DNA of 64,000 nt, taken from IMG/VR virus record IMGVR_UViG_3300020477_000990, positions 264,150 through 328,149 of that record, one strand, 5' to 3'. Below the pieces are notes generated by a model that saw only the letters and a list, made by a program, of their open reading frames with translations, searched no databases and was not told the origin of the DNA. Of the stretch, positions 11,565-61,929 are shown piece after piece; position 1 is the first letter of the stretch, and the number at the start of each line of letters is the position of its first letter. A program made the position numbers and the translations under genes.

Positions 11565-11568
11565 CATT

Positions 11569-21186: not shown

Positions 21187-21405
21187 ATGGATATTTCAAA
21201 AGGTTTATATAAAGCATTAGAAATAAAATATATGGCTGAAATTGAAGATGCAAAAGTGCGTTTAGTAATATATTTTGAAAAATCAGTTGCTATTGGAGAA
21301 CATCCACAGCATACTGAAGAAATGGATAAGTTATTATCACAAATATCTGGTGCTGAAGATAATTTAGAATCGTTAAAAAAATATTTCAATACTTATGACA
21401 ATTAA
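21187..21405 (+). CDS. small hypothetical protein (GEHP motif)
   Basis: 72 aa ORF. Confidence 0.6.
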   Translation: MDISKGLYKALEIKYMAEIEDAKVRLVIYFEKSVAIGEHPQHTEEMDKLLSQISGAEDNLESLKKYFNTYDN

Positions 21406-26628: not shown

Positions 26629-26637
26629 ATATATAAA

Positions 26638-28657: not shown

Positions 28658-29739
28658 TGGTTAATAATTACAATAAATTTTTTAGTGATACGTCTCTAGT
28701 AAAGTGCTATTCAGAATTTCAACGATTAGAAGAAGTAATTGTTGGTAGTGCATATAAACCAGATTGCTTTGATAGTAGTGAGCAATTTAGCCAAGAAGCC
28801 AAAGACTTATTAAAAAGAGTGTTTACAGAAACAGCAGAAGATTTAGAAGTACTTGTTAGTATATTAAAAGCTGAAGGCATAATAGTACAACGTCCTAAAG
28901 TAATGCAAGATCCACTTGCAAAATATAATATGGGAGAATTTGATATTGAATATGCAAACCAACCTTTGCAACCAAGAGATATATTAGGATTTTATGGTAA
29001 TAAAATTATTGAAGCATACACAAAAGACAGAACAAGATATTTTGAAAATTGGTGTTCAAGAGATATATTAAAGCAATATTATTTGCGTGGTGCAGAGTGG
29101 ATAGCAATGCCACCACCACAATTAAATAAAAAAACATACCAAGATTATTATCAAAATAGTGAAGTACTTTTTCATAATGCTAACTTAATTAAATGTGGTA
29201 AAGATATATTCCATTCACAATCACATCAAAAAGATCCTGTAAAAGGTAAAGGTACAGAACAAGGTTTAGAATGGTATAAAAAGCAATTGCCAGAATTTAC
29301 ATTTAATGAAATACCTGTTGGAGGTCATGCTGATGGTAAAATTGCATTAATTAAACCAGGTTTATTAGTAACTTGGAAAAAAGAATGGATACCAGAAAAG
29401 TTAAAATCATGGGATTGTATTATAACAGAATCAGGAACAAAGTTTCCAGAAGATTTTAAAAAAACACGTAAAGAACATTTTTATAAAGATTATATTGAAA
29501 AATGGTTATCGCATTGGATTGGTTATGTTGATGAAACAGTATTTGATGTTAATATGTTGAGTATATCAGAAGATAAAGTTATTTGTACAGGAACAGATAA
29601 AGAAGTATTTGCAAAATTAGAACAACACGGAGTAACACCTATATATTGGAAATTTAGACATCAATATTTTTGGGATGGCGGAGTACATTGTTTAACAGCA
29701 GATGTAAGACGTAAAGGAGAACAGGAAAATTATTTCTAA
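28657..29739 (+). CDS. amidinotransferase (glycine/inosamine-phosphate family)
   Basis: SEFQRLEEVIVG, QPRD, HADG, FDVN, GGVHCLT. Confidence 0.88.
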   Translation: MVNNYNKFFSDTSLVKCYSEFQRLEEVIVGSAYKPDCFDSSEQFSQEAKDLLKRVFTETAEDLEVLVSILKAEGIIVQRPKVMQDPLAKYNMGEFDIEYANQPLQPRDILGFYGNKIIEAYTKDRTRYFENWCSRDILKQYYLRGAEWIAMPPPQLNKKTYQDYYQNSEVLFHNANLIKCGKDIFHSQSHQKDPVKGKGTEQGLEWYKKQLPEFTFNEIPVGGHADGKIALIKPGLLVTWKKEWIPEKLKSWDCIITESGTKFPEDFKKTRKEHFYKDYIEKWLSHWIGYVDETVFDVNMLSISEDKVICTGTDKEVFAKLEQHGVTPIYWKFRHQYFWDGGVHCLTADVRRKGEQENYF

Positions 29740-31022
29740 TGGACAATCAAGCATGGAAGAAACGTGATTGGGATTGGCACAAAACAATCACTAAAAAATG
29801 TGTAGCACCTTGGCATAGTTTAACTATCGAATGGGATGGTGAAGTATATGCTGATGCTGTGGCGTTTAAACCATATGGAAGTATATATGAAAATACTTTA
29901 ACTGAATTATGGAATTCTCCAAAAGCAGTTAATCTTCGTAAATCATGGAGCAAAGGATTGCCAGATAATATAATATGTGCTAGTTGTATAAAGAAAGAAG
30001 AAACAGTAGGTAGTTCTAGACGACAATACTTTTATAGAAATTTGCCATCTGAATTATTAAAAACAGCAACATATGATCCAGAGCAAAAACCTAATATATG
30101 GTATTTAGAAATTAACTCATCAAATAAATGTAATTTAAAATGTAGAATGTGTAATGGGCAAGTTTCAAGTACTTGGATTAAAGAAGAAACACAATTAGCA
30201 AAAATATCTCCTAGTTGGATGCCAAAAAGAAAAAATGGAAAATACTCTAGAGTTGATTTTGATGTTATTAAAAATGTTTTAGAAAAAAGAGAATATTTTA
30301 AAGATTTGCAATTTTTAAAGTTAACAGGCGGTGAGCCATTAATGGAAGAACAAAATTATCAATTAATGGAACAATTTATTGAATGGGATATTGCAAAAAA
30401 TGTTATGCTTGATATTAACACTAACGGAACATTTATGAATGAAAGATTAATAAACATTGCTAAACATTTTAAATTAGTTAAGTTACATATAAGTTTAGAA
30501 GGAACAGGAGAGTTATATCAATATATACGTGGTGGAGAAAACTTTACTTTAGATCAATTAGAAACAAATATAATTGAATTCAACAAGTTACCAAATACAG
30601 TAATAATTTATACTGTTACAGTACAAATATATAATATTTTTAATTTATCAGATATATGGAATTGGTATTTAAAAATAAGAAAACCAACTAATGAAATTTA
30701 TTTTAAAAATGTTGTAGTTAATCCTCCACATTTAAATTTTCAAATATTACCTAATAGTTTAAAGTTAGAAGCATATGAAATAATGAAACAAGCAGATTTA
30801 CCACAAGGTGAGTATTGGGAATTAGATGATTTTAGTCAAGGTGATATAGGATTTAGCAATATTATGAAGAATTTACAGAATCTAAATACATATAACGAGC
30901 AACGTTTAAAAGAGTTTGTCCAGTTTACACGTGATATTGATACTATAAGAAAAACGGATATTAAAAAAATTGTCCCGCAATTAGCAGGATTATTTGAGGA
31001 AGTATATGAAGCAAGAGCCTAA
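29739..31022 (+). CDS. radical SAM protein with N-terminal twitch-like domain
   Basis: CVAPW, CASC, CNLKCRMC, TGGEP. Confidence 0.88.
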   Translation: MDNQAWKKRDWDWHKTITKKCVAPWHSLTIEWDGEVYADAVAFKPYGSIYENTLTELWNSPKAVNLRKSWSKGLPDNIICASCIKKEETVGSSRRQYFYRNLPSELLKTATYDPEQKPNIWYLEINSSNKCNLKCRMCNGQVSSTWIKEETQLAKISPSWMPKRKNGKYSRVDFDVIKNVLEKREYFKDLQFLKLTGGEPLMEEQNYQLMEQFIEWDIAKNVMLDINTNGTFMNERLINIAKHFKLVKLHISLEGTGELYQYIRGGENFTLDQLETNIIEFNKLPNTVIIYTVTVQIYNIFNLSDIWNWYLKIRKPTNEIYFKNVVVNPPHLNFQILPNSLKLEAYEIMKQADLPQGEYWELDDFSQGDIGFSNIMKNLQNLNTYNEQRLKEFVQFTRDIDTIRKTDIKKIVPQLAGLFEEVYEARA

Positions 31023-32223
31023 AACATTTTGTATTTTGCCATGGATGCATTTAGCAACAAATTCTAGTGGAAATTATAGAGTATGTTGTAATTCAACTCC
31101 AGGTAAAAATTTTATTTTAGATAAAAATGGTGAGCCTTATAAAATTTATAAAGCTGATATTAAAGAAATGTGGAACTCTGAAACATATAGAAATTTACGT
31201 TTGCAACTACTTAAAGAAGAATATCCAGATATGTGTCAACGTTGCTGGAGAGAAGAAGCAAGTGATATTAAATCTGCTCGTCAAAGTTTTAACGAAGCAT
31301 ATTCACATTTTATTGATGGAGCATTATCAAATACAGATATAGAAGGTAAAGCACCATTAAAAGTAGGGTATGTTGATTTACGTTTAGGAAACTTATGTAA
31401 TTTAAAATGTCGTATGTGTAATCCATGGGCAAGTAACCAATGGACTAAAGAATGGAATAAAACAACATCATATGATGGTAAAGATATACCAGAAGATGAA
31501 CGTACGAGATTAGAGCATATGGATTGGCCCACAAATGAAAAAACGTGGGAAAACTTAATGCCAATTATAGATTCAGTAGAAGAAATTTACTTAACAGGTG
31601 GAGAACCTACATTAGCATTAGAACAATATAAGTTATTTGATAAATGTATTGAATTAGACAAAGCAAAAGATATTGTATTAAAGTATAATACTAATTTAAC
31701 TAATATACCACCTAAAATGATTGAGTATTGGAAAAACTTTAAAAAGATTAAGATTAATGCTTCAATAGATGGGTTTGATGAGCTTAATAGATATATTAGG
31801 TATCCAACAAATTGGAAGTCAGTTGATAAAAATCTTAAAATATTTCATGAAATAGAAAAAGAAGGTAAAATGAGAGTGCAGATTCATACTACTGTACAAT
31901 TATATAATATACTTGATATAACAGATTTATTTGAATATGTTGATCAGTTTGGTTATTTTCCGTATTTAAATATATTAGATCATCCAGATTACTTAAATGT
32001 AAGAGTGTTGCCATTGCACCTTAAAGAATGTGTAGCAGAAGAATTACAAAAGTATATTGATAAGCCAAAAGTAAAAGGGTTAATAACTTATATGATGGAC
32101 GAAGATTGGTCACAGCATACAGATAAATTTATTGAATATACTAATTGGCTAGATAAATCACGTAAGCAAAATGTTCTTGATATTGTTCCTGGATTAGAAG
32201 ACATAATAAATTTAAAAAAATAA
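31006..32223 (+). CDS. radical SAM protein with N-terminal twitch-like domain
   Basis: FCILPW..RVCC..CQRC, CNLKCRMC, TGGEP. Confidence 0.88.
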   Translation: MKQEPKTFCILPWMHLATNSSGNYRVCCNSTPGKNFILDKNGEPYKIYKADIKEMWNSETYRNLRLQLLKEEYPDMCQRCWREEASDIKSARQSFNEAYSHFIDGALSNTDIEGKAPLKVGYVDLRLGNLCNLKCRMCNPWASNQWTKEWNKTTSYDGKDIPEDERTRLEHMDWPTNEKTWENLMPIIDSVEEIYLTGGEPTLALEQYKLFDKCIELDKAKDIVLKYNTNLTNIPPKMIEYWKNFKKIKINASIDGFDELNRYIRYPTNWKSVDKNLKIFHEIEKEGKMRVQIHTTVQLYNILDITDLFEYVDQFGYFPYLNILDHPDYLNVRVLPLHLKECVAEELQKYIDKPKVKGLITYMMDEDWSQHTDKFIEYTNWLDKSRKQNVLDIVPGLEDIINLKK

Positions 32224-38076: not shown

Positions 38077-38443
38077 TAAACTTACACAATGGGGATCTTT
38101 AATCGGTGTTATTTGTGCTATCGGTGGTGGATTTTATGCTTGGGGTGAATTTAATACAAGATTAGCAAATATTGAAAGTAGACCAGTTGCTGACATGACA
38201 TCTATAACTGAAGATGTAGCAAATTTAAAAGTAGATATGGTTGATAGAATTACTGCTATTGAAGATAAACTTGAAGCACAATCAGATACAGAATTAGGTA
38301 CAATCCAAGCCGACATTAGTGAAATAAAAGACTCACTAGTTAAAGCATTAAAAGATATCGAGATTCAAAGTAAAGTAAATGAATTGCAAGATCAAAAAAT
38401 TGAACAAGTAAGATTAAAAGCAACAAATCCATTAGCAAATTAA
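38063..38443 (+). CDS. single-TM coiled-coil protein
   Basis: IGGGFYAWGEF TM segment, coiled coil, NPLAN end. Confidence 0.65.
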   Translation: MNVINKLTQWGSLIGVICAIGGGFYAWGEFNTRLANIESRPVADMTSITEDVANLKVDMVDRITAIEDKLEAQSDTELGTIQADISEIKDSLVKALKDIEIQSKVNELQDQKIEQVRLKATNPLAN

Positions 38444-39435
38444 ATTTCAGCGAATGTATGTTGTTTTTTTCCAAAGTGAGAACAACTCTTTTGACATCTT
38501 GACAAGAACATAGGATGGTTTTCATTCCAACTATCTTTTAGTATTTGTGAGAACCATTCATGATCTAATATATCTTGAATATCATGTTCAAGTGAATTAT
38601 TCCAATTAGAACTATATTTAGAAAATTTTTCAGACATATCATCACGTTTGTACCAATTATTATCATACAAATAACAACAAGGCCAAATTTGATAATTAGC
38701 ACCAAAGTAAATTTCACCTTCATGTATTAGTTTACATTTTATATTTAAATTTTTAGTTTCGTTTTTAATTTCAGGATGTTGATATTTTTTATTTGTTAAA
38801 GATACTTTGTTTATAACTTCTTTAGTTTTTTTATTAACTACAGTATGCGTACTTTCTTGTTTCATAGAATAACGTAGTGAAAATTTAAATCCAAGTTTAG
38901 TAGATAGTTGTTGTGCTTTTTCTATATCATCGATATTATGATCAAATGGATTATAAACCCATTGTCCTTTGCCACCAGCATCAGAATATGCAGTCATATT
39001 TTCTACAAGTTTATTCCAATTAACACCAACTCTATAAATGTGATTTGTATTTTCAAAGCCATCTACACAAAAACGCATATCTAATTTTGGATTGTCTTTG
39101 CTAATTGCTCCTAGTTCTGCCCAATATTCTTTTGAACGCAATCCACCGTTAGTAGAAACAATTATAACCTTTGGATTCATAGATAATGTGTATTCACATA
39201 TTTCTATAAATTCTTGATTTACTAATGGATCGCCTAAAACACCACAATAAAAAATTTCTTTGTTTTCTATATATTCTTTTGAGTGTAATACTTTTTTATA
39301 GTTTTCTAGAGTAATATCAGCTAATTCTACATCTGGGTTAGTTTCCCCTTTTAATGTTCTAGCACACCCAGGACATCTAGCATTACATCTAGTGGTTAAT
39401 TCTACTTCTATTTTCTTAAGATTTTGTACGAGCAT
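38440..39435 (-). CDS. radical SAM protein with C-terminal SPASM/twitch-like domain
   Basis: CNARCPGC, CGVLGDP, IWPCC, CQKSC; the only clearly real minus-strand gene; TATAAATA 5 nt upstream of its ATG. Confidence 0.88.
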   Translation of the reverse strand: MLVQNLKKIEVELTTRCNARCPGCARTLKGETNPDVELADITLENYKKVLHSKEYIENKEIFYCGVLGDPLVNQEFIEICEYTLSMNPKVIIVSTNGGLRSKEYWAELGAISKDNPKLDMRFCVDGFENTNHIYRVGVNWNKLVENMTAYSDAGGKGQWVYNPFDHNIDDIEKAQQLSTKLGFKFSLRYSMKQESTHTVVNKKTKEVINKVSLTNKKYQHPEIKNETKNLNIKCKLIHEGEIYFGANYQIWPCCYLYDNNWYKRDDMSEKFSKYSSNWNNSLEHDIQDILDHEWFSQILKDSWNENHPMFLSRCQKSCSHFGKKQHTFAEI

Positions 39436-45124: not shown

Positions 45125-46060
45125 ATGAAAATAATCGCCGGGCAAAGTAATAGAAATTTAGCAGAATCTATTGCAGAGCATTGTTTTACTAGTTTAGTTC
45201 CTGCTAACATTGGAACATTTGCAGACGGCGAATGTTCAGTTGAATTATTAGAGAATGTTCGAGGAGAAGATTGTTTTATAATTCAATCAACAAGTTCACC
45301 AGTTAATGATAATTTAATGGAATTGTTAATTATGATTGACACACTTAAAAGAGCATCAGCGAAACGTATTACAGCAGTTATGCCATATTTTGGTTATGCA
45401 AGGCAAGATAGAAAGAGTGCATCACGTACTCCTATTACGGCAAGATTAGTTGCTAACTTATTAACTGAAGCAGGTGCAAATAGAATTTTAACAATGGATC
45501 TTCATGCTGGGCAGATACAAGGATTTTTTAATATACCTGTTGATGATTTAACATCTAGATTATTGTTTGTAAAAGATATTAAAAGGAAATTGCAAGATGA
45601 AGCAACTAAAACAGTTTTTGTATCACCAGATGCAGGAGGAGTTGTAAGGGCAAGAAAATTTGCAGATGCATTTAGTGGCATGATTGCAATTGTTGATAAA
45701 AGAAGATCAAGACCAGGTGTTAGTGAAGCTATGCACGTTATTGGTAATGTAAGAGATAAACACGCAATATTAGTTGATGATATGGTAGACTCAGGCGGCA
45801 CACTTTGTAATGCGGCAAAAATATTATTGGCCAAAGGTGCGTTAAGTGTAAGAGCATATATTACTCATGGAGTATTAACAAATGATTCTTGTAAAAAAAT
45901 TCAGGATAGTGATTTAAAAGAATTGGTTATAACAGATTCTATAAAATATAATTGTCCTCCAGAAATTACAAAAATTAAAATAGTATCAATTGATAAATTG
46001 TTTGGAGAAGCTCTTAGAAGAGTAACAAATGAGGAATCAGTAAGTACCTTATTTTCTTAA
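45125..46060 (+). CDS. prs: ribose-phosphate pyrophosphokinase
   Basis: [33 protein letters not shown]. Confidence 0.96.
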
Positions 46061-48270: not shown

Positions 48271-48495
48271 ATGTGGGATAAAGTTATTAATGGCGTTAAG
48301 AAATTAACTGAAGTAGGAATTACGTTAATTTCATTTGGCGTTGTATTACAGGTGTTATTTGGTGACAAACTAATTGGGTTTTATGACCTTGATGTAGTTG
48401 CTAATATCATTAATATCGTAAATCAAATCGGTAGCCAAGGTCTTGTAGGCCTTGTAGCTTTATGGATCCTTTGGTGGATTTTTACTAAGAGATAA
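48271..48495 (+). CDS. small two-helix membrane protein (paralogue of 58937)
   Basis: LTEV...VLQV.FG...DVV.N...GLVGLVA; SD AAGGAG. Confidence 0.75.
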   Translation: MWDKVINGVKKLTEVGITLISFGVVLQVLFGDKLIGFYDLDVVANIINIVNQIGSQGLVGLVALWILWWIFTKR

Positions 48496-50904: not shown

Positions 50905-50965
50905 GTTTTTAATTTTCTCTTGACAGTATAAATATGTATGTATATACATAGATTAAGGAATTGTC

Positions 50966-51352
50966 ATGACAGATAAAACATTTAAAGATTATTTGAAGCT
51001 AGTTGAAGACGGTACTCCAGAGCCAAGTGTAACACCACATGATGATCTTGGTTTAGCAGACGAGTTAGTTAATATAGCACAAAATGATCCAGATTTATAT
51101 AATAGACAGTATTTTCCAATAATCAAGAACTTATTGCGTAAAAGAGTAAAAGGAGTATATGATCATAATTTAGCTATTAAATTATGGCGTTACTTAATTG
51201 ACAATGTTGCTAAACATGATGCAGGGCATATGGCTAGACATAAATGGTCAGGTGTAGTTAGAAATTTAGCCGCAAAAGAACTTGCAGATGAAGAACTTGG
51301 TAATATGGAAAATGGTGAATATGATCATATTGATTTAAAACGAGGAGCATAA
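50966..51352 (+). CDS. putative internal head protein
   Basis: N-terminus KTFKDYLKLVE resembles T4-type capsid-targeting sequences; TATAAATA upstream. Confidence 0.5.
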   Translation: MTDKTFKDYLKLVEDGTPEPSVTPHDDLGLADELVNIAQNDPDLYNRQYFPIIKNLLRKRVKGVYDHNLAIKLWRYLIDNVAKHDAGHMARHKWSGVVRNLAAKELADEELGNMENGEYDHIDLKRGA

Positions 51353-51354
51353 TA

Positions 51355-51498
51355 ATGGCGATAAAGAGTGTAGAATCAATTATCGATCATAAGCCTAAAC
51401 GCACTAGTCAAGGTGGCAAAAAACCAAAGATGTCATCAATGAATAAAGATAAAAGAAGAACATATAAGAAATATAGAGGGCAAGGTAGAGGTAAATGA
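51355..51498 (+). CDS. 47-aa highly basic phage peptide (not in ORF track)
   Basis: MAIKSVESIIDHKPKRTSQGGKKPKMSSMNKDKRRTYKKYRGQGRGK; SD GAGGAG; ATGA overlap with the next gene. Confidence 0.75.
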   Translation: MAIKSVESIIDHKPKRTSQGGKKPKMSSMNKDKRRTYKKYRGQGRGK

Positions 51499-54400
51499 AA
51501 TTAAACGAACTTATACAACCTAAAGGGACAAAAGCGTCATTTACATTTGGTAGATTTAATCCACCAACTAAAGGTCATTCTCATCTTTTAAATGTAGTTA
51601 AGAAAGCGGCAGGAACAGGTGATCATTATGTTTTCACAGGAAGAACAAATGATAAAGATCGTAATCCATTAAGATATGAAGATAAAATTACATTAATGAG
51701 AGCAATGTTCCCAACAATTAATATTGTAGATGATCCAAATGTAAAAAATCCTTGGCAGGCACTTGAAGAGTTAGGTAAGCATTATGATGATGTTACTTTA
51801 GTTGTTGGTTCGGATAGGCAACAAGATTTCCAATCTCAAATGAGACCATATATGAAAGAGTTTGGTATTAAAAATTTTCAAGTAATTAGTTCAGGAGAAC
51901 GTGATGCAGACTCAACTGATGTGCAAGGTATTTCGGCAACTAAAGCTAGAGCATTTGCTAGAGTAGGAGACTTTAAATCATTTTCACAAACAGTAGATGG
52001 TGGCGAAACACTTAAAAAAGAATTATATAATAAAGTAAGACAAGGTATGGGAGTTACTGAAAGTAAAAAGCCAGTACCACCTAAAAAACCAAATCCAGTT
52101 GCAAAACAATTAACAGATCCAAAATTTAGACCACAAACAGTTAAAGATAAGAAAAAAGAAATTGATAAAGGATATGTTAAGCACAAAGGCAAGGCGTATG
52201 ATATTAATGAAGCATATATTATGGATTTAAATCAAAACCAAGATTTACTTGTATTAAGAGTTAAAGACACAGATAAAAAAGGACATATAGAAGTTAGAGG
52301 TAAAAAGAATTATGAAACAGATGGGTATGATCCAAAAGATCCATTGCACAGAGTTTTAGATCAATTAGATGGAGCAACAGTTTCAAGATTATATTCAGAT
52401 GAAAAAGTAGTTTTAAATCCAAAAAATCCTAGAACAGCACCAACAATAAAAAAAGCACAAGAACTTATGAAAGAACAAGAGCCAAGTAAGCCAATTGTTT
52501 ATGTTGACATGGACGGCGTATTAGCAAACTTCTTTGAAGAGTATGCTAAATTGGCAGGAGTTAAATCAGGAAACTATAAAGATATTCCACCAGCTAAAAC
52601 AGACCCTACATTAAATAAAATGGTAGGTACAGATTTTTTTAATAGATTACCAAAGTTTCCAACAGCAGATAAATTATTGCAATTAGTTACATCGATGTTT
52701 GGTAGCTATTCAATTTTATCAGCACCATTAAGAGGTGATCATCAAAATAGTACAGCACAAAAACATAAATGGATACAACGTGAACTTGCTATTAAGCCAG
52801 ATAATGTTATTATAGTTGGAAGAAAAGATTCTTATGCTACACAGGCAGATGGCACACCTAATATATTAATTGATGATAGAGGAAGAAATGTTGAAGCATG
52901 GAGAAATAGAGGTGGGCTTGGAGTTAAGTATCAAGCTGATGAAGATCCTTTATCTAAAGTAGAACAAGCACTTACACAATTTAAAGGACAGTTTACTTTG
53001 AAAGAATGGGGCGGGCTAATTGTTAAGGGCATAAATACCACAGCAGATGTAGGTATGGATGCAATTAAAAAGCAGTCAGGAAAATTAGGATTTAAAGTTG
53101 ATAAACAAGGAAAGCCACCAATAATGAATACAAAAGGTCAAGCAGTAGTTAAACGTATGCAAGAGCAGTTAATTAAAATTAACGGTTCAAATAAAGATTT
53201 AACATTACAGCAACAAATAGATTTATTAGAAATTACTAAAGGTATTAAAAATATCGTTAAAGAAAGAAAAGCAAAAAGAGTTAAAAAAGCATCATCTAAT
53301 GCATCAGAAGTTCCATATCAAAATGATGCAGGAACAATGAGTTTACTTACACATCCTGGTACAGAGCTTTGGCAAAAAATGAAAGCAACATCTAAGCCAG
53401 GAACAGAAGAATGGTTTAAAACTTGGAGAACATTATCATACTTAACTAAAGGTAGAAAGAATCATTATATGTTACCTATTAAAGAAGAATTAGAAAAACT
53501 TTTAGTTAAGTATAAAATTATTAAAGAAAGTGATGTAGTTGATTTACAACAAGCAATTGCTAAAAGAGTTTCATCAGTAACTGATCCAGCACTTTTAAAT
53601 AAAATAGCAAGTATGTTACGTAGAAGTAATATTGGTAACATTTCAAGAATGGCATTTAAGCAAGACGAAGATGCGGCAAAATTTATTAATAGGTTATCAG
53701 AAATAATTGTAGGAATTGAAGTTCCAATAAATGATAAAATTGCGTTCCTTAGAAAATTTGGAAGATCTAATTTTATTAAACCTGAAGTACTATTTGATAA
53801 TAGTGGTGCAGTACATTCAATGGATGATTGGTGGGAAGGAACTGGATTTGCAACAACTATGTTTAAGTTAATGATAAACGATCCACAGCTTCAAGGAAAA
53901 TCAGCAGGTGAATCTGGACCAGGTGAAGTTGCAATAGCTTGTTTCCATAAAAAGATTTCAGTAGGTTCTGATCCATCAGCAGGATACGATTTAAAATGGG
54001 GTAATCAAGAAATTGAAGTTAAAACAAAAGCATCAGAAAAATCTAGTTCAGGTGGCGGACGTTGGACAGCATATGATGGTGCTCCATTAGAAACTTATTT
54101 ACAAAGTGGTCAAAGTTTATTAGATCCAGAAAAAGTTCCTGCAGGTGTTAGAGCAACAAAATCATCACGTGCTGGAACACAAATAAGTTTTGCAGAAGTT
54201 TTAAATAATCCACAATACTTAAAAGATCCTAATACACCGTTAACTCAACAACAACAAAAAGAAATTTTTGCAAAAGTATTAAAACAAGCATATCAAAGTG
54301 CACCTAATGAAATTATTAATACAGCATTAGCAAATTATCCTAACGTAACAGATAAAGATATTGCACAGGCGGCATTTGCTAGTTATAGAGTTAAGCAAGG

Positions 54401-54557
54401 ATTTCAGTCAATGCTATTAATGAAGGCATCAGGTGGCGGAATTAGTACAATACACTTTAGTGAATTAGATAAAGGAATTGATAATTTTAAAGTTAATGGT
54501 CCGTATGTACGTGGACAAAAGCAACGTGGAATGGATGTTCAAGCAACATTAAGGTAA
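51495..54557 (+). CDS. multidomain polyprotein: cytidyltransferase-like + HAD 5'-nucleotidase-like + PD-(D/E)xK-like
   Basis: GRFNPPTKGH (HxGH-type), VYVDMDGVLANF...LIDD (HAD), GPGE...D...EIEVK; N-terminal MKLNEL tag. Confidence 0.7.
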   Translation: MKLNELIQPKGTKASFTFGRFNPPTKGHSHLLNVVKKAAGTGDHYVFTGRTNDKDRNPLRYEDKITLMRAMFPTINIVDDPNVKNPWQALEELGKHYDDVTLVVGSDRQQDFQSQMRPYMKEFGIKNFQVISSGERDADSTDVQGISATKARAFARVGDFKSFSQTVDGGETLKKELYNKVRQGMGVTESKKPVPPKKPNPVAKQLTDPKFRPQTVKDKKKEIDKGYVKHKGKAYDINEAYIMDLNQNQDLLVLRVKDTDKKGHIEVRGKKNYETDGYDPKDPLHRVLDQLDGATVSRLYSDEKVVLNPKNPRTAPTIKKAQELMKEQEPSKPIVYVDMDGVLANFFEEYAKLAGVKSGNYKDIPPAKTDPTLNKMVGTDFFNRLPKFPTADKLLQLVTSMFGSYSILSAPLRGDHQNSTAQKHKWIQRELAIKPDNVIIVGRKDSYATQADGTPNILIDDRGRNVEAWRNRGGLGVKYQADEDPLSKVEQALTQFKGQFTLKEWGGLIVKGINTTADVGMDAIKKQSGKLGFKVDKQGKPPIMNTKGQAVVKRMQEQLIKINGSNKDLTLQQQIDLLEITKGIKNIVKERKAKRVKKASSNASEVPYQNDAGTMSLLTHPGTELWQKMKATSKPGTEEWFKTWRTLSYLTKGRKNHYMLPIKEELEKLLVKYKIIKESDVVDLQQAIAKRVSSVTDPALLNKIASMLRRSNIGNISRMAFKQDEDAAKFINRLSEIIVGIEVPINDKIAFLRKFGRSNFIKPEVLFDNSGAVHSMDDWWEGTGFATTMFKLMINDPQLQGKSAGESGPGEVAIACFHKKISVGSDPSAGYDLKWGNQEIEVKTKASEKSSSGGGRWTAYDGAPLETYLQSGQSLLDPEKVPAGVRATKSSRAGTQISFAEVLNNPQYLKDPNTPLTQQQQKEIFAKVLKQAYQSAPNEIINTALANYPNVTDKDIAQAAFASYRVKQGFQSMLLMKASGGGISTIHFSELDKGIDNFKVNGPYVRGQKQRGMDVQATLR

Positions 54558-54565
54558 ATATTATT

Positions 54566-54862
54566 ATGCGTATATTAGAAATTATAAGTGAAAATGACAG
54601 ACGTGATTTTATGAAACGTTTGGGTAAAACAGCGGCGGCTACAGCTGGTGCTTTAGCTTTAGGATCATTTGCACTTCCATCAAAAGCATGGCCTAGTGAA
54701 TTACCTGATAATTTTAACTTTATGGATGAGTTTTTAAGTGATAAAGTTTTAAATGATCCAAAATATAAAGAATTTAAATTAAATGGTGAAAAGCTTCTTG
54801 ATATGTTAAAGAATATAGAAAAAAATAAGTTAAAAAAACAGGATAAAGGCATAGACGTTTAA
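54566..54862 (+). CDS. putative internal head protein with internal Tat signal
   Basis: MRILEIISE followed by RRDFMK, a hydrophobic stretch and SKA. Confidence 0.6.
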   Translation: MRILEIISENDRRDFMKRLGKTAAATAGALALGSFALPSKAWPSELPDNFNFMDEFLSDKVLNDPKYKEFKLNGEKLLDMLKNIEKNKLKKQDKGIDV

Positions 54863-55114
54863 ATGAAAATTGGTGATATTATTACTGAAGAAGCTACAGT
54901 AGGATCTACTATGGCTGGTAATTTTGCGGCATTGGCATTTCCTATGACTCCTGGTACTACACATGATCAGGCTATTAAAGCAGTAGATCCATTCGGTAAA
55001 ATATTCAAAAATGCTAAAAAGAAACGTAAAGATATATGGAAAATGGGTTACAGCCCAGATGCTTTAGCATATAGGACTAAAGTGAAAGATATCTATCCTA
55101 TTTTAAAACGTTAA
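54863..55114 (+). CDS. putative internal head protein
   Basis: MKIGDIITEE tag. Confidence 0.55.
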   Translation: MKIGDIITEEATVGSTMAGNFAALAFPMTPGTTHDQAIKAVDPFGKIFKNAKKKRKDIWKMGYSPDALAYRTKVKDIYPILKR

Positions 55115-55145
55115 AAAAGATAAATATTTGTAAGGTACACATATT

Positions 55146-55655
55146 ATGAAATTAAACGAGCTATTTAAACCAGAACAATCATCGTCATTACAAGATTTTA
55201 AAGATTATTATGACAATGCTACTCAATCTATGATTACTAGAGTAAAAGCTGGTGAAAATTATCATGAAGTAATTAATCAATTAGCACGAGAGTTTGCATC
55301 ACAACATAGTGATAGTTACGAAATGTTTGATTTAATGGCTGACGGTTTAAAAAAGCGACATTGGGAAATGTTTTGGGATGAAAAAGAAGAAAAATCAGAA
55401 CCAGAAACACCTGTTGCAATAGTAGTACAACCAGATGAAAAAGAAGTTAAAGAATATGATGGTCCAGATGAAACCCAAGATAATCAAGGATATACAGATA
55501 AGGAAATTAAAATGGCATTTGGTATTTTAAATGATCCTAGATATAAGCAAGGTAATTATTCAGGAGCATACGCGGCCATTGAAAAAATTGCTAAAGGTTT
55601 AGCAAGTCATCCAAGTGTAGCAAACGCATTAAGACGAGCAAACGAGTCGGAGTAA
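55146..55655 (+). CDS. putative internal head protein
   Basis: MKLNELF tag; TAAATA upstream. Confidence 0.55.
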   Translation: MKLNELFKPEQSSSLQDFKDYYDNATQSMITRVKAGENYHEVINQLAREFASQHSDSYEMFDLMADGLKKRHWEMFWDEKEEKSEPETPVAIVVQPDEKEVKEYDGPDETQDNQGYTDKEIKMAFGILNDPRYKQGNYSGAYAAIEKIAKGLASHPSVANALRRANESE

Positions 55656-55659
55656 CGCC

Positions 55660-58134
55660 ATGCGTATCCACGAAGTTGCACCCCCAGGAAGAGAAAAGCA
55701 AGTAAAGAAACTTAAAAAGAAGTTTGATGATCCATCGGCGGCTTACGCCATTGCTTGGGCTCAACATAACAAACATGGTAAGCCTAAAAAAGAAACAAAG
55801 TATGCAAACGTTCCAGGAAGAGAATACGATGCAGATGATAGAGCAGAAGCAAAATTATGGTCTTTGCAAGATCGTAAATCAGCACTTTTAAAAAAATTAG
55901 ATAGAGTTGCAGGCGAAGGTGGCAAAGTTAATATTAATGATCCAATATATAAAGAATTACAAGCAGTTAAAAAAGCAATAGGAAATTTCAAAAAGCAAGG
56001 AATTGGCGAAGATAAAATTCCAAACGATATGCCTGGTATGGTTGGTGATAGTGCTTGGTATAAAAAAACAGGTCAATTAGTTAGAATAGTCGATTACACT
56101 CAAGATGGTAAAGATGGAATTTACACAATTTCATTTGGTGATGGCAGAGGTGAAATGGATGTATTGGTGCATGATTTAGAATTTATAGATGATACAACAT
56201 ATCAAGATTTACCAGACTATGGTGATACAGAAGATAATATGTCTGATATAGAAGCAGATGCAGATACACTAGCATCAGCTGGAATGGGTAGCGATGAAGA
56301 TTATGGCTACTATGGTGATAATGAATCAGTTGATCCTATTAGAAGTGATAGAGGTGCTAAAGAAGAATTAGCAAAAGAAATTTATTACAATGGATCTAGT
56401 GCAAAACATTATCAAAAAATGTATCCTACTTGGGAAGACTTTATGAACTCAGAAGACTTCGAAGAAGAAAATATGAGATTATGGAATAAGTTTGGTGAAA
56501 GTAAAAATGTTGAAATGTGTCCAGAAGCTTGTTGCGGTGTACCAGTAACAGAGTGTTCATGTGGTTCAGATTGTAAACATTGTGATTGTAATGCAAAAAA
56601 TAATGAAGTAAAAGAAGATTTAAAAAAATCATTAAATGAAAGAATGCCTGCTTCAGTTATTAAACATAAACAAAAACTTTCTTTTATGACTGATAAAGAA
56701 TTAGCAGATAGATTTAAAGATTTTGATGAAACAAGATTACGTCAAATGGCATGGAGACATGGCTATGGCAAAATGAGTTCACACTATTGGGATAGAGTAC
56801 AAGCTGGTAAAAACGAATCAGTAACTAATGAAGACCAAACAACAGTTGACGTTAAAGCAATATTAGACAAGCACGGTATTAAAAGTACATACGATATTGA
56901 ATATGGTTCAGATGCCTTTAGTGATTTATTTGATTATTTTTCAAGTGATCCTGATGAAATGCCATACGGTGTTCAAAAAGCAAGAACAGGAATGCCAGAT
57001 GAATGGATTGCAAATAGACTTATAGACTTAGGTTTACTTAAAGAAGCACCATTCCGAAGAAGATTTGCAACAAAAAGTAAAAATCCATTTAGCGGAACAC
57101 AAAAAGCATTAAACACATTAGGGTCAATGTTTGGTTCAAGAAAAGCACAAGGTAGATTAAACACAGGCGTTGAAGCAAATAAAATTGCAAAAGATTGGGA
57201 AGATTATACTTCAGGAGATACAGCAAGACAAATAAATAAAAACTTTAATGGATTTTTAGGTAGCATTGGAGGTAGTGGCAATCCTGAAACATCAGCAAAA
57301 TGGTTTCAAAAAAATCATAAAATAACAATTCCACCAGCTGACTATCAAAAAACTTTTAAACAAGATGGTACTCCACAAGAAAGAGATACAGTATTCAATA
57401 TTATAAAAAAGAGTTCATTAGACTCAGATAGTATTCAGACTTGGTTTAAAAATAATCATGGTATGGTACTTACGCAACCTGATGTAAATCAATTATTAGC
57501 AAATCCAAAAACAGCAATTATAGATTTTGTAAAAAGAAAAGAAGCAGGACAAATGGGTCCAAAAGCTGATGCAACAAAGCCAGAAACTAAACCAGATGCA
57601 CAAGGAGATTTATTTACAGGTGATGATCAAGCTGATCCAACATTAGCACAAATTAAAAAATTAAATCCAGATGCTTCACAAAAATCTGTGAAAGCATTAG
57701 ATAAACTTAAACCAGATGCACAAGGAAAAATGGCACCGTTAAATCCAGAAGAAGAAAAAGAATTAGCACCAATATTACAAAAGATAGGTGCGGCATTAAC
57801 TGATCCTGCTAAAAGAGCCAAGTTAGTAAATATGATGACGTCAGGTAAGTATAGTGATTTTAAAGATTTTACATCAATATTGAGTGAATCAATTAGTAGA
57901 GAAGAATTATCTAAATTGGATTATTTGGCTAGACAAGGACTAGTTCCAAGTTCTAAAGTATCAAGATTTAAGACAGCCATGCGTACACTTGCTAAAGGTA
58001 AAGACTTATCAATAACATATAAAAATGATGTAGTAGATGTAGTTGTTAAATTAGCTGGTATTATTACTAAACCTGGTGTAATGCAAATGGTTAGAAGGGG
58101 ACTAAATAAAGATAAGGGTAAAGGTAAAAAGTAA
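55660..58134 (+). CDS. putative internal head polyprotein with Cys-rich module
   Basis: MRIHE tag; modules separated by xxE-S/A/D sites; CPEACCGVPVTECSCGSDCKHCDC. Confidence 0.6.
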   Translation: MRIHEVAPPGREKQVKKLKKKFDDPSAAYAIAWAQHNKHGKPKKETKYANVPGREYDADDRAEAKLWSLQDRKSALLKKLDRVAGEGGKVNINDPIYKELQAVKKAIGNFKKQGIGEDKIPNDMPGMVGDSAWYKKTGQLVRIVDYTQDGKDGIYTISFGDGRGEMDVLVHDLEFIDDTTYQDLPDYGDTEDNMSDIEADADTLASAGMGSDEDYGYYGDNESVDPIRSDRGAKEELAKEIYYNGSSAKHYQKMYPTWEDFMNSEDFEEENMRLWNKFGESKNVEMCPEACCGVPVTECSCGSDCKHCDCNAKNNEVKEDLKKSLNERMPASVIKHKQKLSFMTDKELADRFKDFDETRLRQMAWRHGYGKMSSHYWDRVQAGKNESVTNEDQTTVDVKAILDKHGIKSTYDIEYGSDAFSDLFDYFSSDPDEMPYGVQKARTGMPDEWIANRLIDLGLLKEAPFRRRFATKSKNPFSGTQKALNTLGSMFGSRKAQGRLNTGVEANKIAKDWEDYTSGDTARQINKNFNGFLGSIGGSGNPETSAKWFQKNHKITIPPADYQKTFKQDGTPQERDTVFNIIKKSSLDSDSIQTWFKNNHGMVLTQPDVNQLLANPKTAIIDFVKRKEAGQMGPKADATKPETKPDAQGDLFTGDDQADPTLAQIKKLNPDASQKSVKALDKLKPDAQGKMAPLNPEEEKELAPILQKIGAALTDPAKRAKLVNMMTSGKYSDFKDFTSILSESISREELSKLDYLARQGLVPSSKVSRFKTAMRTLAKGKDLSITYKNDVVDVVVKLAGIITKPGVMQMVRRGLNKDKGKGKK

Positions 58135-58394
58135 TGAAAGATCAAATTATAATGTTACTAATAGGTATTTTAATTGCGTTAGGCGGTTGGAACCTTACCC
58201 AAACTTTTAGTTTATCAACTACTCAAGCAGTTATTGATGATAAAGTTGATAAATTAGAAAGAAGCGTCGAGAAATTGCAAGATCAAATGGATGATATGCA
58301 AAAAATGGATGAAGAGATTGTTGAACAACATGAAGATTTGTTTAGACAATTACAAGAAGGCAATACAGCACCATCAACAGGATATAATTACTAA
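58134..58394 (+). CDS. single-TM coiled-coil protein
   Basis: Hydrophobic N-terminus plus heptad repeats. Confidence 0.6.
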   Translation: MKDQIIMLLIGILIALGGWNLTQTFSLSTTQAVIDDKVDKLERSVEKLQDQMDDMQKMDEEIVEQHEDLFRQLQEGNTAPSTGYNY

Positions 58395-58783
58395 TGAAAA
58401 TACATGATATTATAAATGAAGACAATGTTATTGATCTTAAAGGCCCACAAGGTAATGCTTATTTCCTTTTAGGCACAGCTAAAAAATTAGCAAAAGATTT
58501 AAATCTTGATTACGACAAAATTCAAAAAGAAATGACTGCTTGTAATTACGATAATTTAGTAGATGTTTTTAAAAAATACTTTGGTGAATATGTTGATGTT
58601 AGAGAAAATGAACTTGGTGTGCCACGTATGAACAAGTATAACATTTATACAACAAAAAGCAAAGATGGTGATTTTCAGGCCTGGCAAGGTGAAAAACATC
58701 TTGGAACTTTTAAAACGATTCAAGATTTAAATAAATTTTGGGATCACGCAATAAACAGCGGAAAAATTAAACCTCAAGAGTAA
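58394..58783 (+). CDS. putative internal head protein
   Basis: MKIHDIINE tag followed by an IDLKGPQGNAYFLLG domain. Confidence 0.6.
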   Translation: MKIHDIINEDNVIDLKGPQGNAYFLLGTAKKLAKDLNLDYDKIQKEMTACNYDNLVDVFKKYFGEYVDVRENELGVPRMNKYNIYTTKSKDGDFQAWQGEKHLGTFKTIQDLNKFWDHAINSGKIKPQE

Positions 58784-58936: not shown

Positions 58937-59161
58937 ATGCTTGATAAAATTAAATCGGTACTGTCAAGTCTTACAGAAGTGGCATTAACGTTTTTACTAC
59001 TTGGCATCGTGTTGCAAGTGGTGTTCGGATCAGTTCCGTTCTTCCCTGCAGATGTCGTAGGTAATCTTGTTGCACTAGTTGGGTCACTTGGTGACGCAGG
59101 TGTAGTAGGACTTATTGCAATTGGTGTTATTTATTGGCTCGCTAACAGAGGCAAGAAGTAA
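58937..59161 (+). CDS. small two-helix membrane protein (paralogue of 48271)
   Basis: LTEV...VLQV.FG...DVVGN...GVVGLIA; SD AAGGAGG. Confidence 0.75.
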   Translation: MLDKIKSVLSSLTEVALTFLLLGIVLQVVFGSVPFFPADVVGNLVALVGSLGDAGVVGLIAIGVIYWLANRGKK

Positions 59162-59231: not shown

Positions 59232-59307
59232 GCCCTCTTAGCTCAGTTGGTAGAGCAACTGATTTGTAATCAGTAGGTCCGCAGTTCGAATCTGTGAGGG
59301 GGCACCA
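59232..59307 (+). tRNA. tRNA-Thr(TGT)
   Basis: Arm ACTGA-TTTGTAA-TCAGT; CCA encoded. Confidence 0.95.
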
Positions 59308-59701: not shown

Positions 59702-60634
59702 ATGAGAATATTTCCAAGCAAGGCTTTAATAGGCTTTTTAGCAGTAATATTTGCGTTTGTATTAGTCAGTTGTAGTGAAGCTGAAGCTGTAGAGACAAAA
59801 ATCTACGGTACGTTTAACTACAAATTGAGTAATGACGAGAATAGTTCTGGTACAAGTCATTTAAAGGCTGAAAACAACTCATCGTTGGTAGGCATTGACG
59901 CCGCTGAAGATATTGGCGAAGGCATAACTGGCTTTGCTAAATTAGAAGTAGGTGTTGATACTGATGATGGCAATAACAATCCTTTTGATTCACGTTTAGC
60001 TTATGTAGGCTTAAACTTTGGTCAACTAGGATCGATATCTGCAGGACGTCAGTCATCTCCATTTACTGATAATGTAAGTGGAATAACAAATGTATTTGAA
60101 GTTTATGGTTCAGGTGCAGATCAAAATTTGTTCACACGTGATGCAAATACGATCGCATACTCGAATCAAATGGCGGGAATTACATTTGATGGTCTAGCAA
60201 AGATAGACGGTTCTACAGGTAAGAATGGGATAGATGTTTCAGAAGCAACAGCTACCTATTCTACATTTGGAGTAACTGTAAGTGGTGGTGTATCAAATGA
60301 TCATGTAAATGATATTGATTACTACGGCGCTGGAGTATCTTATGATGCTTCGTCAATGGGTGTACCTGTAAGTGTAGGTTATACTTACACATATAAGGAT
60401 GCCGCAACTGATGTTACAGGCAATGAAATCATTGGATCTTATTCTGTTAGTAATGATTTAAAAGTTACTGGTGGATACGGTAAAATCGAAGATTCAACTG
60501 CATTTTATACAGCAGGAGCATCATATGGAATAACTGGTTCATTATCAACGTATGTTGAATATGAGCATCAAAACAAAACTGGATCAAATAACGATACAGA
60601 CAGTTATTCTACCGGTCTTAAATTTACATTCTAA
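59702..60634 (+). CDS. Gram-negative porin
   Basis: Signal peptide, IYG, S..G..E..G...AKLE, RLAYVGL..G.I.AGR, C-terminal GLKFTF beta-signal. Confidence 0.88.
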   Translation: MRIFPSKALIGFLAVIFAFVLVSCSEAEAVETKIYGTFNYKLSNDENSSGTSHLKAENNSSLVGIDAAEDIGEGITGFAKLEVGVDTDDGNNNPFDSRLAYVGLNFGQLGSISAGRQSSPFTDNVSGITNVFEVYGSGADQNLFTRDANTIAYSNQMAGITFDGLAKIDGSTGKNGIDVSEATATYSTFGVTVSGGVSNDHVNDIDYYGAGVSYDASSMGVPVSVGYTYTYKDAATDVTGNEIIGSYSVSNDLKVTGGYGKIEDSTAFYTAGASYGITGSLSTYVEYEHQNKTGSNNDTDSYSTGLKFTF

Positions 60635-61196: not shown

Positions 61197-61528
61197 GTGA
61201 TTTAGTAGTACTTCATATAATTGATCGTAAAGGTGAGAAACGCACAATAGAAGCAGAAGTTGGTAAAACTTTAAAAGATGTTATAGCAAAAGAAATTGAA
61301 ATGGATCATTTTGGTGACTGTGGAGGTTGTTGTGCCTGTGCAACTTGTCATTTGTATATTGAATCAAGTATGGCATGGTCATTAAATGGTCATCATGAAT
61401 TAGGTGAAGAAGAAAAAGATATGCTTGAAATGACAGACAACGTTACTACAGAATCTAGATTAGGTTGCCAAGTAGAAATAAATCCTCAAATGGATGGAAT
61501 GACAATAACAGTAGCACAAGATATTTAA
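61193..61528 (+). CDS. fdx: 2Fe-2S ferredoxin (adrenodoxin/ISC type)
   Basis: CGGCCACATCH and SRLGCQ. Confidence 0.93.
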   Translation: MSDLVVLHIIDRKGEKRTIEAEVGKTLKDVIAKEIEMDHFGDCGGCCACATCHLYIESSMAWSLNGHHELGEEEKDMLEMTDNVTTESRLGCQVEINPQMDGMTITVAQDI

Positions 61529-61929
61529 TGACAAGAATTAATTTAATAGAGCCTAATAAATTAACTAATCAACATTTAGTTGCAGAATATAGAGAAATTT
61601 TTATGGTTGGATCATCTTTACAAAGATCATTAAAATCACCTAGTTGGGAAAAAACAAAAAATACACTTCCTACTGAATTTACATTAAATGGTGGTCATGT
61701 TAAATTTTTTTATAACAAAGGAAAATATTTAAGTAAAAGATATTTAAAACTTATTAAAGAAATGAAACGTAGAGGTATGAATCCTGATCCAAATCGCAAA
61801 TTTAAAAAAGAACAATGGCCTAATGAATTATATAAAGATTGGCATCCAACAAGTAAAGATATAAAAATAATTAAAAAACGAATAGAAGAAAAAATAAATT
61901 TAAAACCTGATTGGTATAGATATGGTTGA
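61528..61929 (+). CDS. denV: pyrimidine-dimer DNA glycosylase (endonuclease V)
   Basis: MTRIN..L..QHLVAEYRE, GHVKFFYNK, KPDWY. Confidence 0.93.
   Translation: MTRINLIEPNKLTNQHLVAEYREIFMVGSSLQRSLKSPSWEKTKNTLPTEFTLNGGHVKFFYNKGKYLSKRYLKLIKEMKRRGMNPDPNRKFKKEQWPNELYKDWHPTSKDIKIIKKRIEEKINLKPDWYRYG

Follow-up and report, generated by a model that had tools for sequence, protein, structure and literature searches.

The closest described parallels to the locus reported here are the head proteins of phage T4 and those of phiKZ-type phages. In the T4 record (NC_000866), internal proteins (IP) II and III begin MKTYQEFIAE/A and IPI begins MKTFKEF and continues to ITE/A, Alt begins MELITE/LF and gp24 MAKINELLRE/S, and gp23 contains FLTE/A (here and below a stroke follows the Glu of the motif; the T4 cleavage positions are those of the literature). 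In the T4 capsid targeting sequence (CTS), Asp at the cleavage position prevents processing yet leaves targeting intact, the two functions mapping to different residues, and T4-type prohead proteases act inside the prohead (PMC9026906). In phiKZ and SPN3US, too, the cut is made after Glu, the sites following a three-residue motif (PMC5694885). Here we analysed a gene cluster (50966-58783) in a 64-kb stretch of viral DNA, hereafter the window, which forms the final 64 kb of a 328,149-bp Tara Oceans contig (IMGVR_UViG_3300020477_000990, the same as JGI 3300020477 Ga0211585_10000017). An earlier note had read this cluster as a cassette system whose polyproteins share a capsid-targeting-like tag, are loaded into the head, cut after Glu and injected with the DNA; of this, the capsid-targeting-like tag and the cutting after Glu proved well supported, by inference from the evidence given below. 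The cluster is best explained as the late cargo operon of a marine jumbo myovirus that is related to T4 and akin to Pseudomonas phage PA5oct, and we think it rather probable that it represents a T4-style system of capsid targeting and prohead-protease cleavage that has come to include modular polyproteins.

A short N-terminal tag in the cluster and in related phages

The cluster genes lie head to tail and tightly packed, several stop and start codons overlapping:

50927..50934, plus strand: T4-type late-promoter motif TATAAATA, 31 nucleotides (nt) upstream of the first cluster gene
50966..51352, plus strand: 128-amino-acid (aa) protein starting MTDKTFKDYLKLVE/D, sharing KTFKDYL with a T4-CTS-like protein beside the gp4 homologue
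51355..51498, plus strand: 47-aa very basic untagged protein (phrog_516, phrog_17967), its stop overlapping the start of the 1020-aa gene
51495..54557, plus strand: 1020-aa tagged polyprotein beginning MKLNE/LI, six modules
54566..54862, plus strand: 98-aa tagged protein beginning MRILEIISE/N, with a twin-arginine translocation (Tat) signal at aa 11-42 and a small mature part after it
54863..55114, plus strand: 83-aa tagged protein beginning MKIGDIITEE/ATVG
55146..55655, plus strand: 169-aa tagged protein beginning MKLNE/LF and ending RRANESE
55660..58134, plus strand: 824-aa tagged polyprotein beginning MRIHE/VA
58134..58394, plus strand: 86-aa untagged protein with a membrane segment and a coiled coil, weak match to phrog_739 (Rz-like spanin), 6e-7
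58394..58783, plus strand: 129-aa tagged protein beginning MKIHDIINE/D

The N-termini that the earlier note had listed were all found as given, namely MKLNELI (51495), MRILEIISE (54566), MKIGDIITEE (54863), MKLNELF (55146), MRIHEV (55660), MKIHDIINE (58394) and MTDKTFKDYLKLVE (50966). The tag, which had been ascribed to the cluster as a whole, is carried by six of the genes and is lacking from those at 51355-51498 and 58134-58394. In its strict form, ^M[KR][ILV]x[DE][ILVF], a pattern picked post hoc after the data had been seen, it opens 6 of the 7 consecutive genes in 51495-58783 and none of the 82 other open reading frames (ORFs) of the window (Fisher p = 1.2e-8), and the same six-residue pattern occurs internally at a rate of 0.0013 per position. 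Likewise, [IL]xE falls inside the first 10 residues of 6/7 cluster genes and 7/82 others. A relaxed motif without K/R at position 2 was discarded, since the proteins that it catches by chance include an aldehyde dehydrogenase (21395-22885) and an Smr protein (3931-4170).

The scan was then widened to 127 kb of the same genome (168 ORFs), with F/Y/M also accepted at position 3; the 54566 gene, masked there by an overlapping minus-strand ORF, was added from the window count. Eleven genes carried the widened tag. Six belong to the cluster, two to the head module and two to a block lying between the genes for a helicase and ribonucleotide reductase (RNR), and one is a stray. The two in the head module encode the small proteins p131 and p66 described below, one of them behind a late-promoter motif, in keeping with the earlier expectation that the tag would be enriched among late genes. 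The helicase-RNR block lies outside the window (source contig 247932-254420; L021:1226-7714) and holds two further genes with a relaxed tag; the N-termini concerned are those of a 664-aa DUF6267 protein (MKINDI) and MQIAEV, MNISEF (behind TATAAATA) and MKITEV. This block is syntenic with a PA5oct block of structural proteins mostly detected by mass spectrometry (MS).

On four other viral contigs (L002, L003/L004, L011), syntenic clusters were found in which successive genes start with the tag or a near variant (MRLNEV, MKLQEL, MRLAEL, MRISEI, MLINEI, MKIKEI, MRLYEI, MKLAEF, MKVNEV and, more loosely, MRYSEL and MRFFEL). Among 159 distinct N-termini of the superfamily, 73 were tagged, with the consensus M, K/R (63/73), I/L/Y/F, x, E/D, F/L/I/V. 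The tag is also portable. The C-terminal domain of the 1020-aa protein, which sits internally behind IIKE/S, has 53 stand-alone homologues, 44 of them tagged (MRFQDFKLVE/APGDE, MRYSELKE/AGDE or MRYKELKE, then a variable linker, then the domain). A module recognised by the residues RMPAS follows SLNE/RMP when internal and MKLQELITLGE/RMP when alone; another, module A, follows M[KR][IF]xE[IV]A/PPG when alone and VGEKA/PPG when internal, and the Tat module and a KYANVPGR module are likewise tagged when first and preceded by a junction when internal. These pairs indicated that the tag is added when a module comes first in a gene and that a junction replaces it when the module is internal.

Unlike the internal junctions, the tags have K/R at position 2, place a hydrophobic residue behind the acidic one and allow Asp. 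In a comparison inflated by related sequences, a hydrophobic-x-Glu occurs further downstream in 19 of the 24 tags with Asp at position 5 against 25 of the 49 others, which fits the T4 finding that Asp blocks processing and not targeting.

A tagged stand-alone nuclease-like protein (P0186) is indexed in 168 blocks of the assembly collection, and its contigs (L017-L020) are pelagimyophage- or Melnitz-like, encoding CsgF/CsgG, FecR, guanylate cyclase, S21 and heme oxygenase, so that the tag is not limited to jumbo phages.

Glutamate junctions and module shuffling in the polyproteins

The 1020-aa protein was divided into six modules as follows:

51513..52061, plus strand: module 1, aa 7-189, cytidylyl/adenylyltransferase-like, resembling nicotinamide mononucleotide adenylyltransferase (NMNAT), ends GVTE/S; PF01467 3.4e-7, phrog_3041 6e-46
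52062..52211, plus strand: module 2, aa 190-239, DUF7230 basic peptide, ends DINE/A; PF23876 and phrog_1359, under the Pfam cut-off
52212..52475, plus strand: module 3, aa 240-327, inserted segment, ends LMKE/Q; from orthologue comparison
52476..53006, plus strand: module 4, aa 328-504, NT5C 5'(3')-deoxyribonucleotidase-like, ends TLKE/W; PF06941 8.7e-9 (above cut-off), phrog_2643 1e-21
53007..53528, plus strand: module 5, aa 505-678, ends IIKE/S; L003:1161 and L002:3776 are homologous over aa 502-678 and terminate at that point
53529..54557, plus strand: module 6, aa 679-1020, C-terminal domain, candidate PD-(D/E)xK nuclease; 53 stand-alone homologues of 242-401 aa

The junction Glu residues of this protein are E189, E239, E327, E504 and E678. 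The earlier note had placed module boundaries at Glu sites of this kind, and all five homology-defined boundaries indeed have a hydrophobic-x-Glu within 5 residues; given the 17 such sites in the protein, random placement would reach five of five with P ~1e-4. In the 824-aa protein the junction residues are E45, E117, E222, E280, E327, E386 and E462, with a further possible one at E743, ~25 aa upstream of the closest homology boundary. The RMPAS module offered a larger sample, a Glu being found at most 6 residues upstream in 78 of its 80 copies. The P3 residue of the motif was L/V/I/M/F in 50 of 63 unique contexts (79%, against a background of 24%, p = 4e-20; L 22, V 21, I 4, M 2, F 1) and P2 was free. 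Between the Glu and the module stand one to three small residues (R, GG, G, AG), a spacer whose variability argues that the motif is not part of the module fold. The same junction pattern was found upstream of module A.

Shuffling of modules between related phages, proposed earlier as something to look for, was confirmed, with breaks exactly at x-x-Glu junctions. The 98-aa protein is a whole gene in L003 and the C-terminal module of a 272-aa protein in L002; a 670-aa L002 protein contains counterparts of aa 94-168 of the 169-aa protein and aa 385-462 of the 824-aa one side by side, joined at KRTNE/NLTE; and residues 324-384 of the 824-aa protein form a stand-alone tagged gene in L003. In L002:9629 and L003:7403 the N-terminal tag is followed directly by the DUF7230 segment. 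The 1020-aa protein has orthologues of 932, 943 and 992 aa that start M[NDI]INELLEP; what sets them apart is a single whole module between DINE/ and MKE/. Of the orthologues, P0151 and P0157 lack module 3, and P0158 has another segment in its place. The 824-aa protein comprises at least 8 modules, shared with 765 proteins at E < 1e-3 (HMMER, 1.84 billion representative proteins), which have 45-1537 residues and carry the matched modules at every position. Two other origins of the pattern were considered and set aside: DNA-level recombination cassettes, given conservation at the peptide level with varied codons, and precursors of ribosomally synthesized and post-translationally modified peptides for the nearby radical S-adenosylmethionine (SAM) genes, the proteins being far too long and 20 kb apart.

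Among the smaller proteins, the basic 47-aa protein is kept just upstream of the orthologous polyprotein in L003 and L004. Homologues of the 83-aa protein in L002 and L003 begin MLISEICNKKLKE/DATAG and MLIAEIFNIEINE/DATAG. The 129-aa protein matches a small stand-alone Melnitz phage protein and phrog_1933 over aa 12-67, and L002:13381 over aa 31-128. The 86-aa membrane protein belongs to the operon and is probably not cargo.

Nature of the modules

Only some of the cluster modules are recognisable. Module 1 occurs as a stand-alone gene in cyanomyophages (40-42% identity), some of which annotate it as NMNAT, and in phage Melnitz module 4 forms an untagged gene of its own. A phmmer search of the PDB with the DUF7230 module (52062-52211) gave no match; the alignment of this module to E. 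coli ArfA (hhalign probability 43.5%, E = 2.4e-4 for one pair, 24 columns, 42% identity), over the stretch KPNPMAKAL-SDPKFKPKTETDKKK, is suggestive only. Fe/Mn superoxide dismutase (SOD)-like and PAP2-phosphatase-like modules follow the tag in relatives. The 824-aa protein consists mostly of small modules without recognisable function and matched neither Pfam nor PHROG; the 128-aa protein gave no match in these two databases either, and no peptidase domain was found in the cluster proteins by Pfam.

Structure prediction had been suggested as a check for independent domains. Module 6 does fold alone (AlphaFold2, mean predicted local distance difference test (pLDDT) 82.7, predicted TM-score (pTM) 0.80), and the model of the 824-aa protein, made without alignment, was unusable (pLDDT 42; many short helices and long disordered stretches). 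Across its homologues module 6 has invariant E131, D152, E161 and K163 (numbering of window:53535-54557), an E...D...ExK pattern. Its best PDB matches, HinP1I and MvaI, were not significant (Foldseek E = 0.08-0.9, TM 0.2-0.3), Atlas leads scored 0.81-0.82, and the Foldseek viral library returned uncharacterised phage proteins only; module 6 is possibly a PD-(D/E)xK nuclease.

The Tat signal of the 98-aa protein scored 24.7 bits for TIGR01409 (cut-off 16.7) over aa 11-42, with RRxF[LM]K, a hydrophobic stretch and an AxA-like end. In L002:12280 (aa ~178 of 272), P0060 and P0073 the same module lies inside the chain, signal included, behind IAE/E, LAE/E and VAE/E. Only cutting of the chain would make sense of a Tat signal at an internal position.

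A second recurrent motif, L-x-x-LAG-[ILV], ends the scaffold-like protein of the head module (L028:14424-15536, IVELKKLAGLGVK), opens the SOD-like protein (MDLEYLKKLAGIGE) and an MS-detected PA5oct protein (MFNINDILRLAGV), and also lies inside or at the end of polyproteins (loci L002:11645-12283, L003:7403-9514, L024:9011-9331 and PA5oct EST35_0203). LKKLAG[ILV], a scaffold C-terminus recurring in cargo N-termini or interiors, may be a second, scaffold-mimicking head-entry signal.

A gp21-family protease and tagged head-module proteins in the same genome

A search of the window and the first loci with T4 head proteins (phmmer) gave no match, and head genes were absent from the P0098 context, just as the head module was from Melnitz 8-57 kb and PA5oct 97-120 kb. 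The head module was reached by walking up the source contig via exact-protein look-ups, through RNR and a DnaB/gp41-like helicase, then ThyX, ClpP and UvsW, RecA/UvsX, gp32 and a gp17-type terminase, a T4 gp4 homologue, tail tube and sheath, and T4 gp13 and gp15. The last stretch of the walk was read from an ENA contig 99.99% identical to the JGI source contig over 13 kb. The order of the head module is portal (PF07230), p131, p66, an acidic 334-aa protein, Peptidase_S77, scaffold-like protein and Gp23. A gp21-like prohead protease, which the earlier note had proposed to look for elsewhere in the genome, is thus present (L028:15548-16177, 209 aa; PF03420 93.4 bits against a cut-off of 27, 1.7e-26; blastp to T4 gp21 2e-22, 33% identity). 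Its GEADHP aligns with GELNHP of T4 gp21 and its GVSSRG with GVSSRG, these being the catalytic His and Ser motifs.

The two small proteins after the portal both carry the tag, the basic 131-aa p131 beginning MKIYEI with VLGE/A further on, and the 66-aa p66 beginning MRYRELIKE/N; they occupy the position of the T4 core proteins gp67/gp68. The scaffold-like protein (370 aa) has many hydrophobic-x-Glu sites, and the Gp23 capsid protein (PF07068, 327.8 bits) has a propeptide ending YLAE/AATTG. A 203-aa protein next to the gp4 homologue (L024:8400-9011) starts MKTFKDYLAEA, comparable with the T4 CTS MKTYQEFIAEA, the strings being too short for statistics; the KTFKDYL of the first cluster gene (50966) compares both with this start and with MKTFKEF of T4 IPI. 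The 203-aa protein falls in a PHROG annotated as virion structural and is homologous to PA5oct EST35_0202, recorded as structural by electrospray ionization tandem mass spectrometry (ESI-MS/MS), and the gene order around it is conserved with PA5oct. Among 100 PA5oct genes examined, an ESI-MS/MS note stands on 5 of 6 tagged and 34 of 94 untagged ones (p = 0.03); the tagged proteins so noted are mostly annotated 'structural protein', and as the list also holds enzymes we regard it as soft evidence.

All nine plus-strand copies of TATAAATA, the T4 late-promoter motif, in the window are intergenic and lie 5-113 nt ahead of a gene, although 93% of the window is coding, and copies were also found upstream of the portal gene and the tagged p131 (MKIYEI) gene. 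Inside 50966-58783 we found no sigma-70-like promoter above 10 of 12 and no plus-strand terminator-like site. Judged by its promoter motif, the cluster would be a late operon.

Proposed mechanism and alternatives

In the mechanism that we propose, the tag, a propeptide of 5-14 residues of the form M-[KR]-hydrophobic-x-[DE]-hydrophobic and usually ending hydrophobic-x-Glu, would act like the T4 CTS and give entry into the prohead scaffolding core. The gp21-family (Peptidase S77) protease would strip it and cut the long proteins at their hydrophobic-x-Glu junctions, a motif which, in junctions and tags, appears to fit the T4 gp21 cutting rule. Separate small proteins and enzymes would so be freed inside the head, to leave it with the DNA at the next infection and act there as putative effectors. 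As only an N-terminal tag and a junction motif would be needed, modules could be freely fused, split and swapped, which would explain the shuffling. From the sequences, we consider that the cluster proteins are probably loaded into the capsid and cut apart there.

Several points weigh against this. The cutting rule of the protease is taken over from T4, and its relatives in phiKZ and SPN3US prefer A/S/G at P3 (PMC5694885). Some junctions have a non-hydrophobic P3 (DNE, KNE, ANE, TNE), and Glu-rich linkers are common, so that linker composition could give part of the junction signal. The recognisable modules are nucleotide-metabolism enzymes, which would also be useful late in the cytoplasm without packaging. 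About 110 kb separates the cluster from the head module, and by tblastn the 824-aa protein, the DUF7230 segment and the C-terminal domain have no match in cultured phages. The Asp-5 comparison suffers from the relatedness of its sequences, and that with PA5oct is weak (p = 0.03), since the MS notes also mark enzymes such as RNR.

Some of these points would equally suit polyproteins that are processed without becoming capsid cargo, being cut in the cytoplasm, by the prohead protease or a different one, so that the pieces act late in the producing cell, the Tat piece exported to the periplasm and the enzymes reshaping nucleotide pools, with the tag as a first cleavage or protease-docking site. 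What the junction motif and the internal Tat signal point to is cleavage, not packaging in itself; the modules are of a metabolic kind (NMNAT-like and NT5C in this cluster, and in relatives SOD-like and PAP2-like), and the cluster is remote from the head genes. We nevertheless hold this to be unlikely. A tag with nothing upstream to release is hard to see as a mere cleavage site, and it differs from the internal junctions in its K/R at position 2, in the hydrophobic residue behind the acidic one and in its tolerance of Asp. The same tag stands on head-module proteins and on ESI-MS/MS-noted PA5oct proteins, mostly 'structural protein', and proteases of the T4 type are active inside the prohead (PMC9026906).

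Cleavage itself is dispensed with if these are ordinary multidomain proteins, beads on a string, in which hydrophobic-x-Glu marks the end of a linker helix and the common N-terminus arose as genes split and fused at linkers. The acidic linkers ahead of many modules (EEVDLEEGG and the like) suit such an arrangement, as do the short helices and disordered stretches in the single-sequence model of the 824-aa protein. It would leave unexplained, however, the internal Tat signal, the Met-Lys/Arg start and hydrophobic position 6 that are specific to N-termini, the variable spacer between Glu and module, the match to the T4 CTS and gp21 substrates, and the tag on proteins at the gp67/gp68 position, and we judge it quite improbable. 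Very unlikely, in our view, is that the N-terminus serves some other purpose, either as a translation-initiation optimum in an AT-rich genome, where AAA/AAT-rich second codons are common, or as a degradation or adaptor signal for the phage ClpX (window 9376-10647) and ClpP, both encoded by this genome. Leu and Phe are N-degron residues in bacteria, and a cut after residue 5 would expose one of them in 47 of the 73 tags; but the motif is absent from the 82 other window ORFs, well-expressed late genes included, is conserved at the amino-acid level with varied codons, and such a signal would account neither for the internal junction motif nor for the shuffling. Loading into the prohead followed by cutting at the junctions remains the reading that we favour.

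Genomic context of the window

The window has a G+C content of ~31%, is 93% coding with nearly all genes on the plus strand, and holds 7 tRNAs; a megablast search of the cluster found no DNA-level similarity to cultured phages. Besides DnaK, ClpX, a DNA ligase and a denV homologue, it encodes a set of translation genes unusually full for a phage, consisting of an EF-G-like GTPase (689 aa), ribosomal proteins L11 and S21, IF3, two cold-shock proteins and an Smr protein (translation-related genes at 1858-3927, 4377-4676, 4690-5112, 10644-11201 and 11232-11564). Radical-SAM-like genes number at least 7, five of them within 25.5-39.4 kb (coordinates 8420-9109, 13151-14203, 25519-28107, 29739-32223 and 38440-39435, the last on the minus strand), and no connection between them and the tagged cluster was found.

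Paralogous 74-aa membrane proteins flank the cluster (38% identity over 73 aa, E = 9e-19), one 2.5 kb upstream (48271-48495) and the other just downstream (58937-59161), the latter preceded by a near-consensus sigma-70-like promoter at 58854. The denV (T4 endonuclease V) homologue (61465-61929) and a tRNA (59232-59307) lie at most 3 kb from the cluster. In T4, denV directly adjoins ipII and ipIII, with a tRNA cluster nearby, and the resemblance may be a remnant of synteny or chance. Judged from its sequence only, the 310-aa product of 59702-60634, which has a signal peptide and beta-strands in an alternating pattern, looks outer-membrane-porin-like. Phosphoribosyl pyrophosphate synthase (45125-46060) and nicotinamide adenine dinucleotide (NAD) synthase (11533-12327), together with the NMNAT-like module (51513-52061), point to a phage-coded NAD/nucleotide salvage, which could bear on NAD-depleting host defences.

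Implications

The T4 CTS has so far been a speciality of model phages, confined to a handful of small internal proteins in coliphages. If our reading is correct, the same principle would be widespread in abundant ocean phages, at least 765 protein clusters sharing modules with the 824-aa protein alone, and its extension to shuffled polyproteins would allow a cheap trial of new injected functions. Tag and junction would together make a sequence rule for predicting, in the genomes of uncultured phages, virion cargo and the ends of mature proteins, and the tag would be a short natural means of loading foreign proteins into marine phage capsids. The NAD/nucleotide enzymes, the nuclease-like domain, the periplasm-directed protein and the ribosome-factor-like peptide would then be candidate factors for host takeover or anti-defence in the first minutes of infection. 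A bolder proposal, which we consider possible but on balance doubtful, is that marine T4-related phages, both jumbo PA5oct-like and pelagimyophage-like, share a general plug-in cargo system, in which it would be enough for a module to gain the tag of 5-10 residues, or to be placed behind a hydrophobic-x-Glu junction of a polyprotein already present, to enter the prohead and be released by the protease, the pieces being sent to the periplasm (Tat signal), the ribosome (ArfA-like peptide) and the cytoplasm (nucleotide/NAD enzymes, nuclease) of the next host.

Comparison with known systems

The phiKZ-type phages (phiKZ, 201phi2-1, SPN3US) are, like the phage studied here, jumbo myoviruses, and many of their head-internal proteins are cut after Glu by a gp21-related protease, with propeptides thought to target the proteins into the prohead (PMC5694885). 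They differ in the motif, A/S/G-x-E, in propeptides that are mostly 80-130 residues long and in having paralogue families and not shuffled polyproteins; moreover, that lineage forms a phage nucleus, whereas this phage has T4-type gp13, gp15, gp4, gp20, gp21 and gp23. The polyvalent proteins (Iyer et al. 2017, PMC5512222) resemble the cluster in carrying many unrelated domains per polypeptide, two to 15 there against six in the 1020-aa and at least 8 in the 824-aa protein, and in the proposal that they are delivered with the DNA and processed. Those proteins embed a zincin-like (MPTase) peptidase and typical domains (ART, ArdC-N, DarB-like); in Pfam, PHROGs and NCBIfam searches, the cluster showed neither a peptidase domain nor any of the domains named in excerpts of that paper. 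As no peptidase is embedded, the cluster does not belong to the polyvalent class as defined; here the prohead protease would do the processing, acting in trans on the junction motif, and the proteins share an N-terminal tag. The Dar system of phage P1 (DarA, DarB, Hdf, DdrB) is likewise an operon of accessory proteins that are incorporated into the head during assembly and injected, some of them processed, but we found no sequence relation between it and the cluster, and Dar incorporation follows an ordered hierarchy of protein-protein interactions, not a shared short N-terminal tag.

The likeness is closest to T4 IPI, IPII, IPIII and Alt with gp21. In both systems a short propeptide ending in hydrophobic-x-Glu is set on otherwise unrelated proteins, the cargo gene set is hypervariable, and the genome holds a gp21-family protease together with portal, scaffold and Gp23 genes; the promoter motif of the cluster suggests that it may also share the late expression of the T4 genes. 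The starts of the 50966 protein and of the 203-aa L024 protein are near MKTYQEFIAEA/MKTFKEF, while MKLNELF is nearer to Alt (MELITELF) and gp24 (MAKINELL), though these strings are too short for statistics. Compared with T4, the common tag here is shorter and follows a consensus of its own, M-[KR]-hydrophobic-x-[DE]-hydrophobic; where the T4 proteins are single and small, here 800-1000-aa polyproteins join 6-9 modules at the predicted cleavage motif; the repertoire includes enzymes and a Tat-signal protein; and the family is large (765 representative clusters) and so far found only in uncultured marine phages. The proteins of this cluster would appear to work like the T4 internal proteins without being homologous to them.

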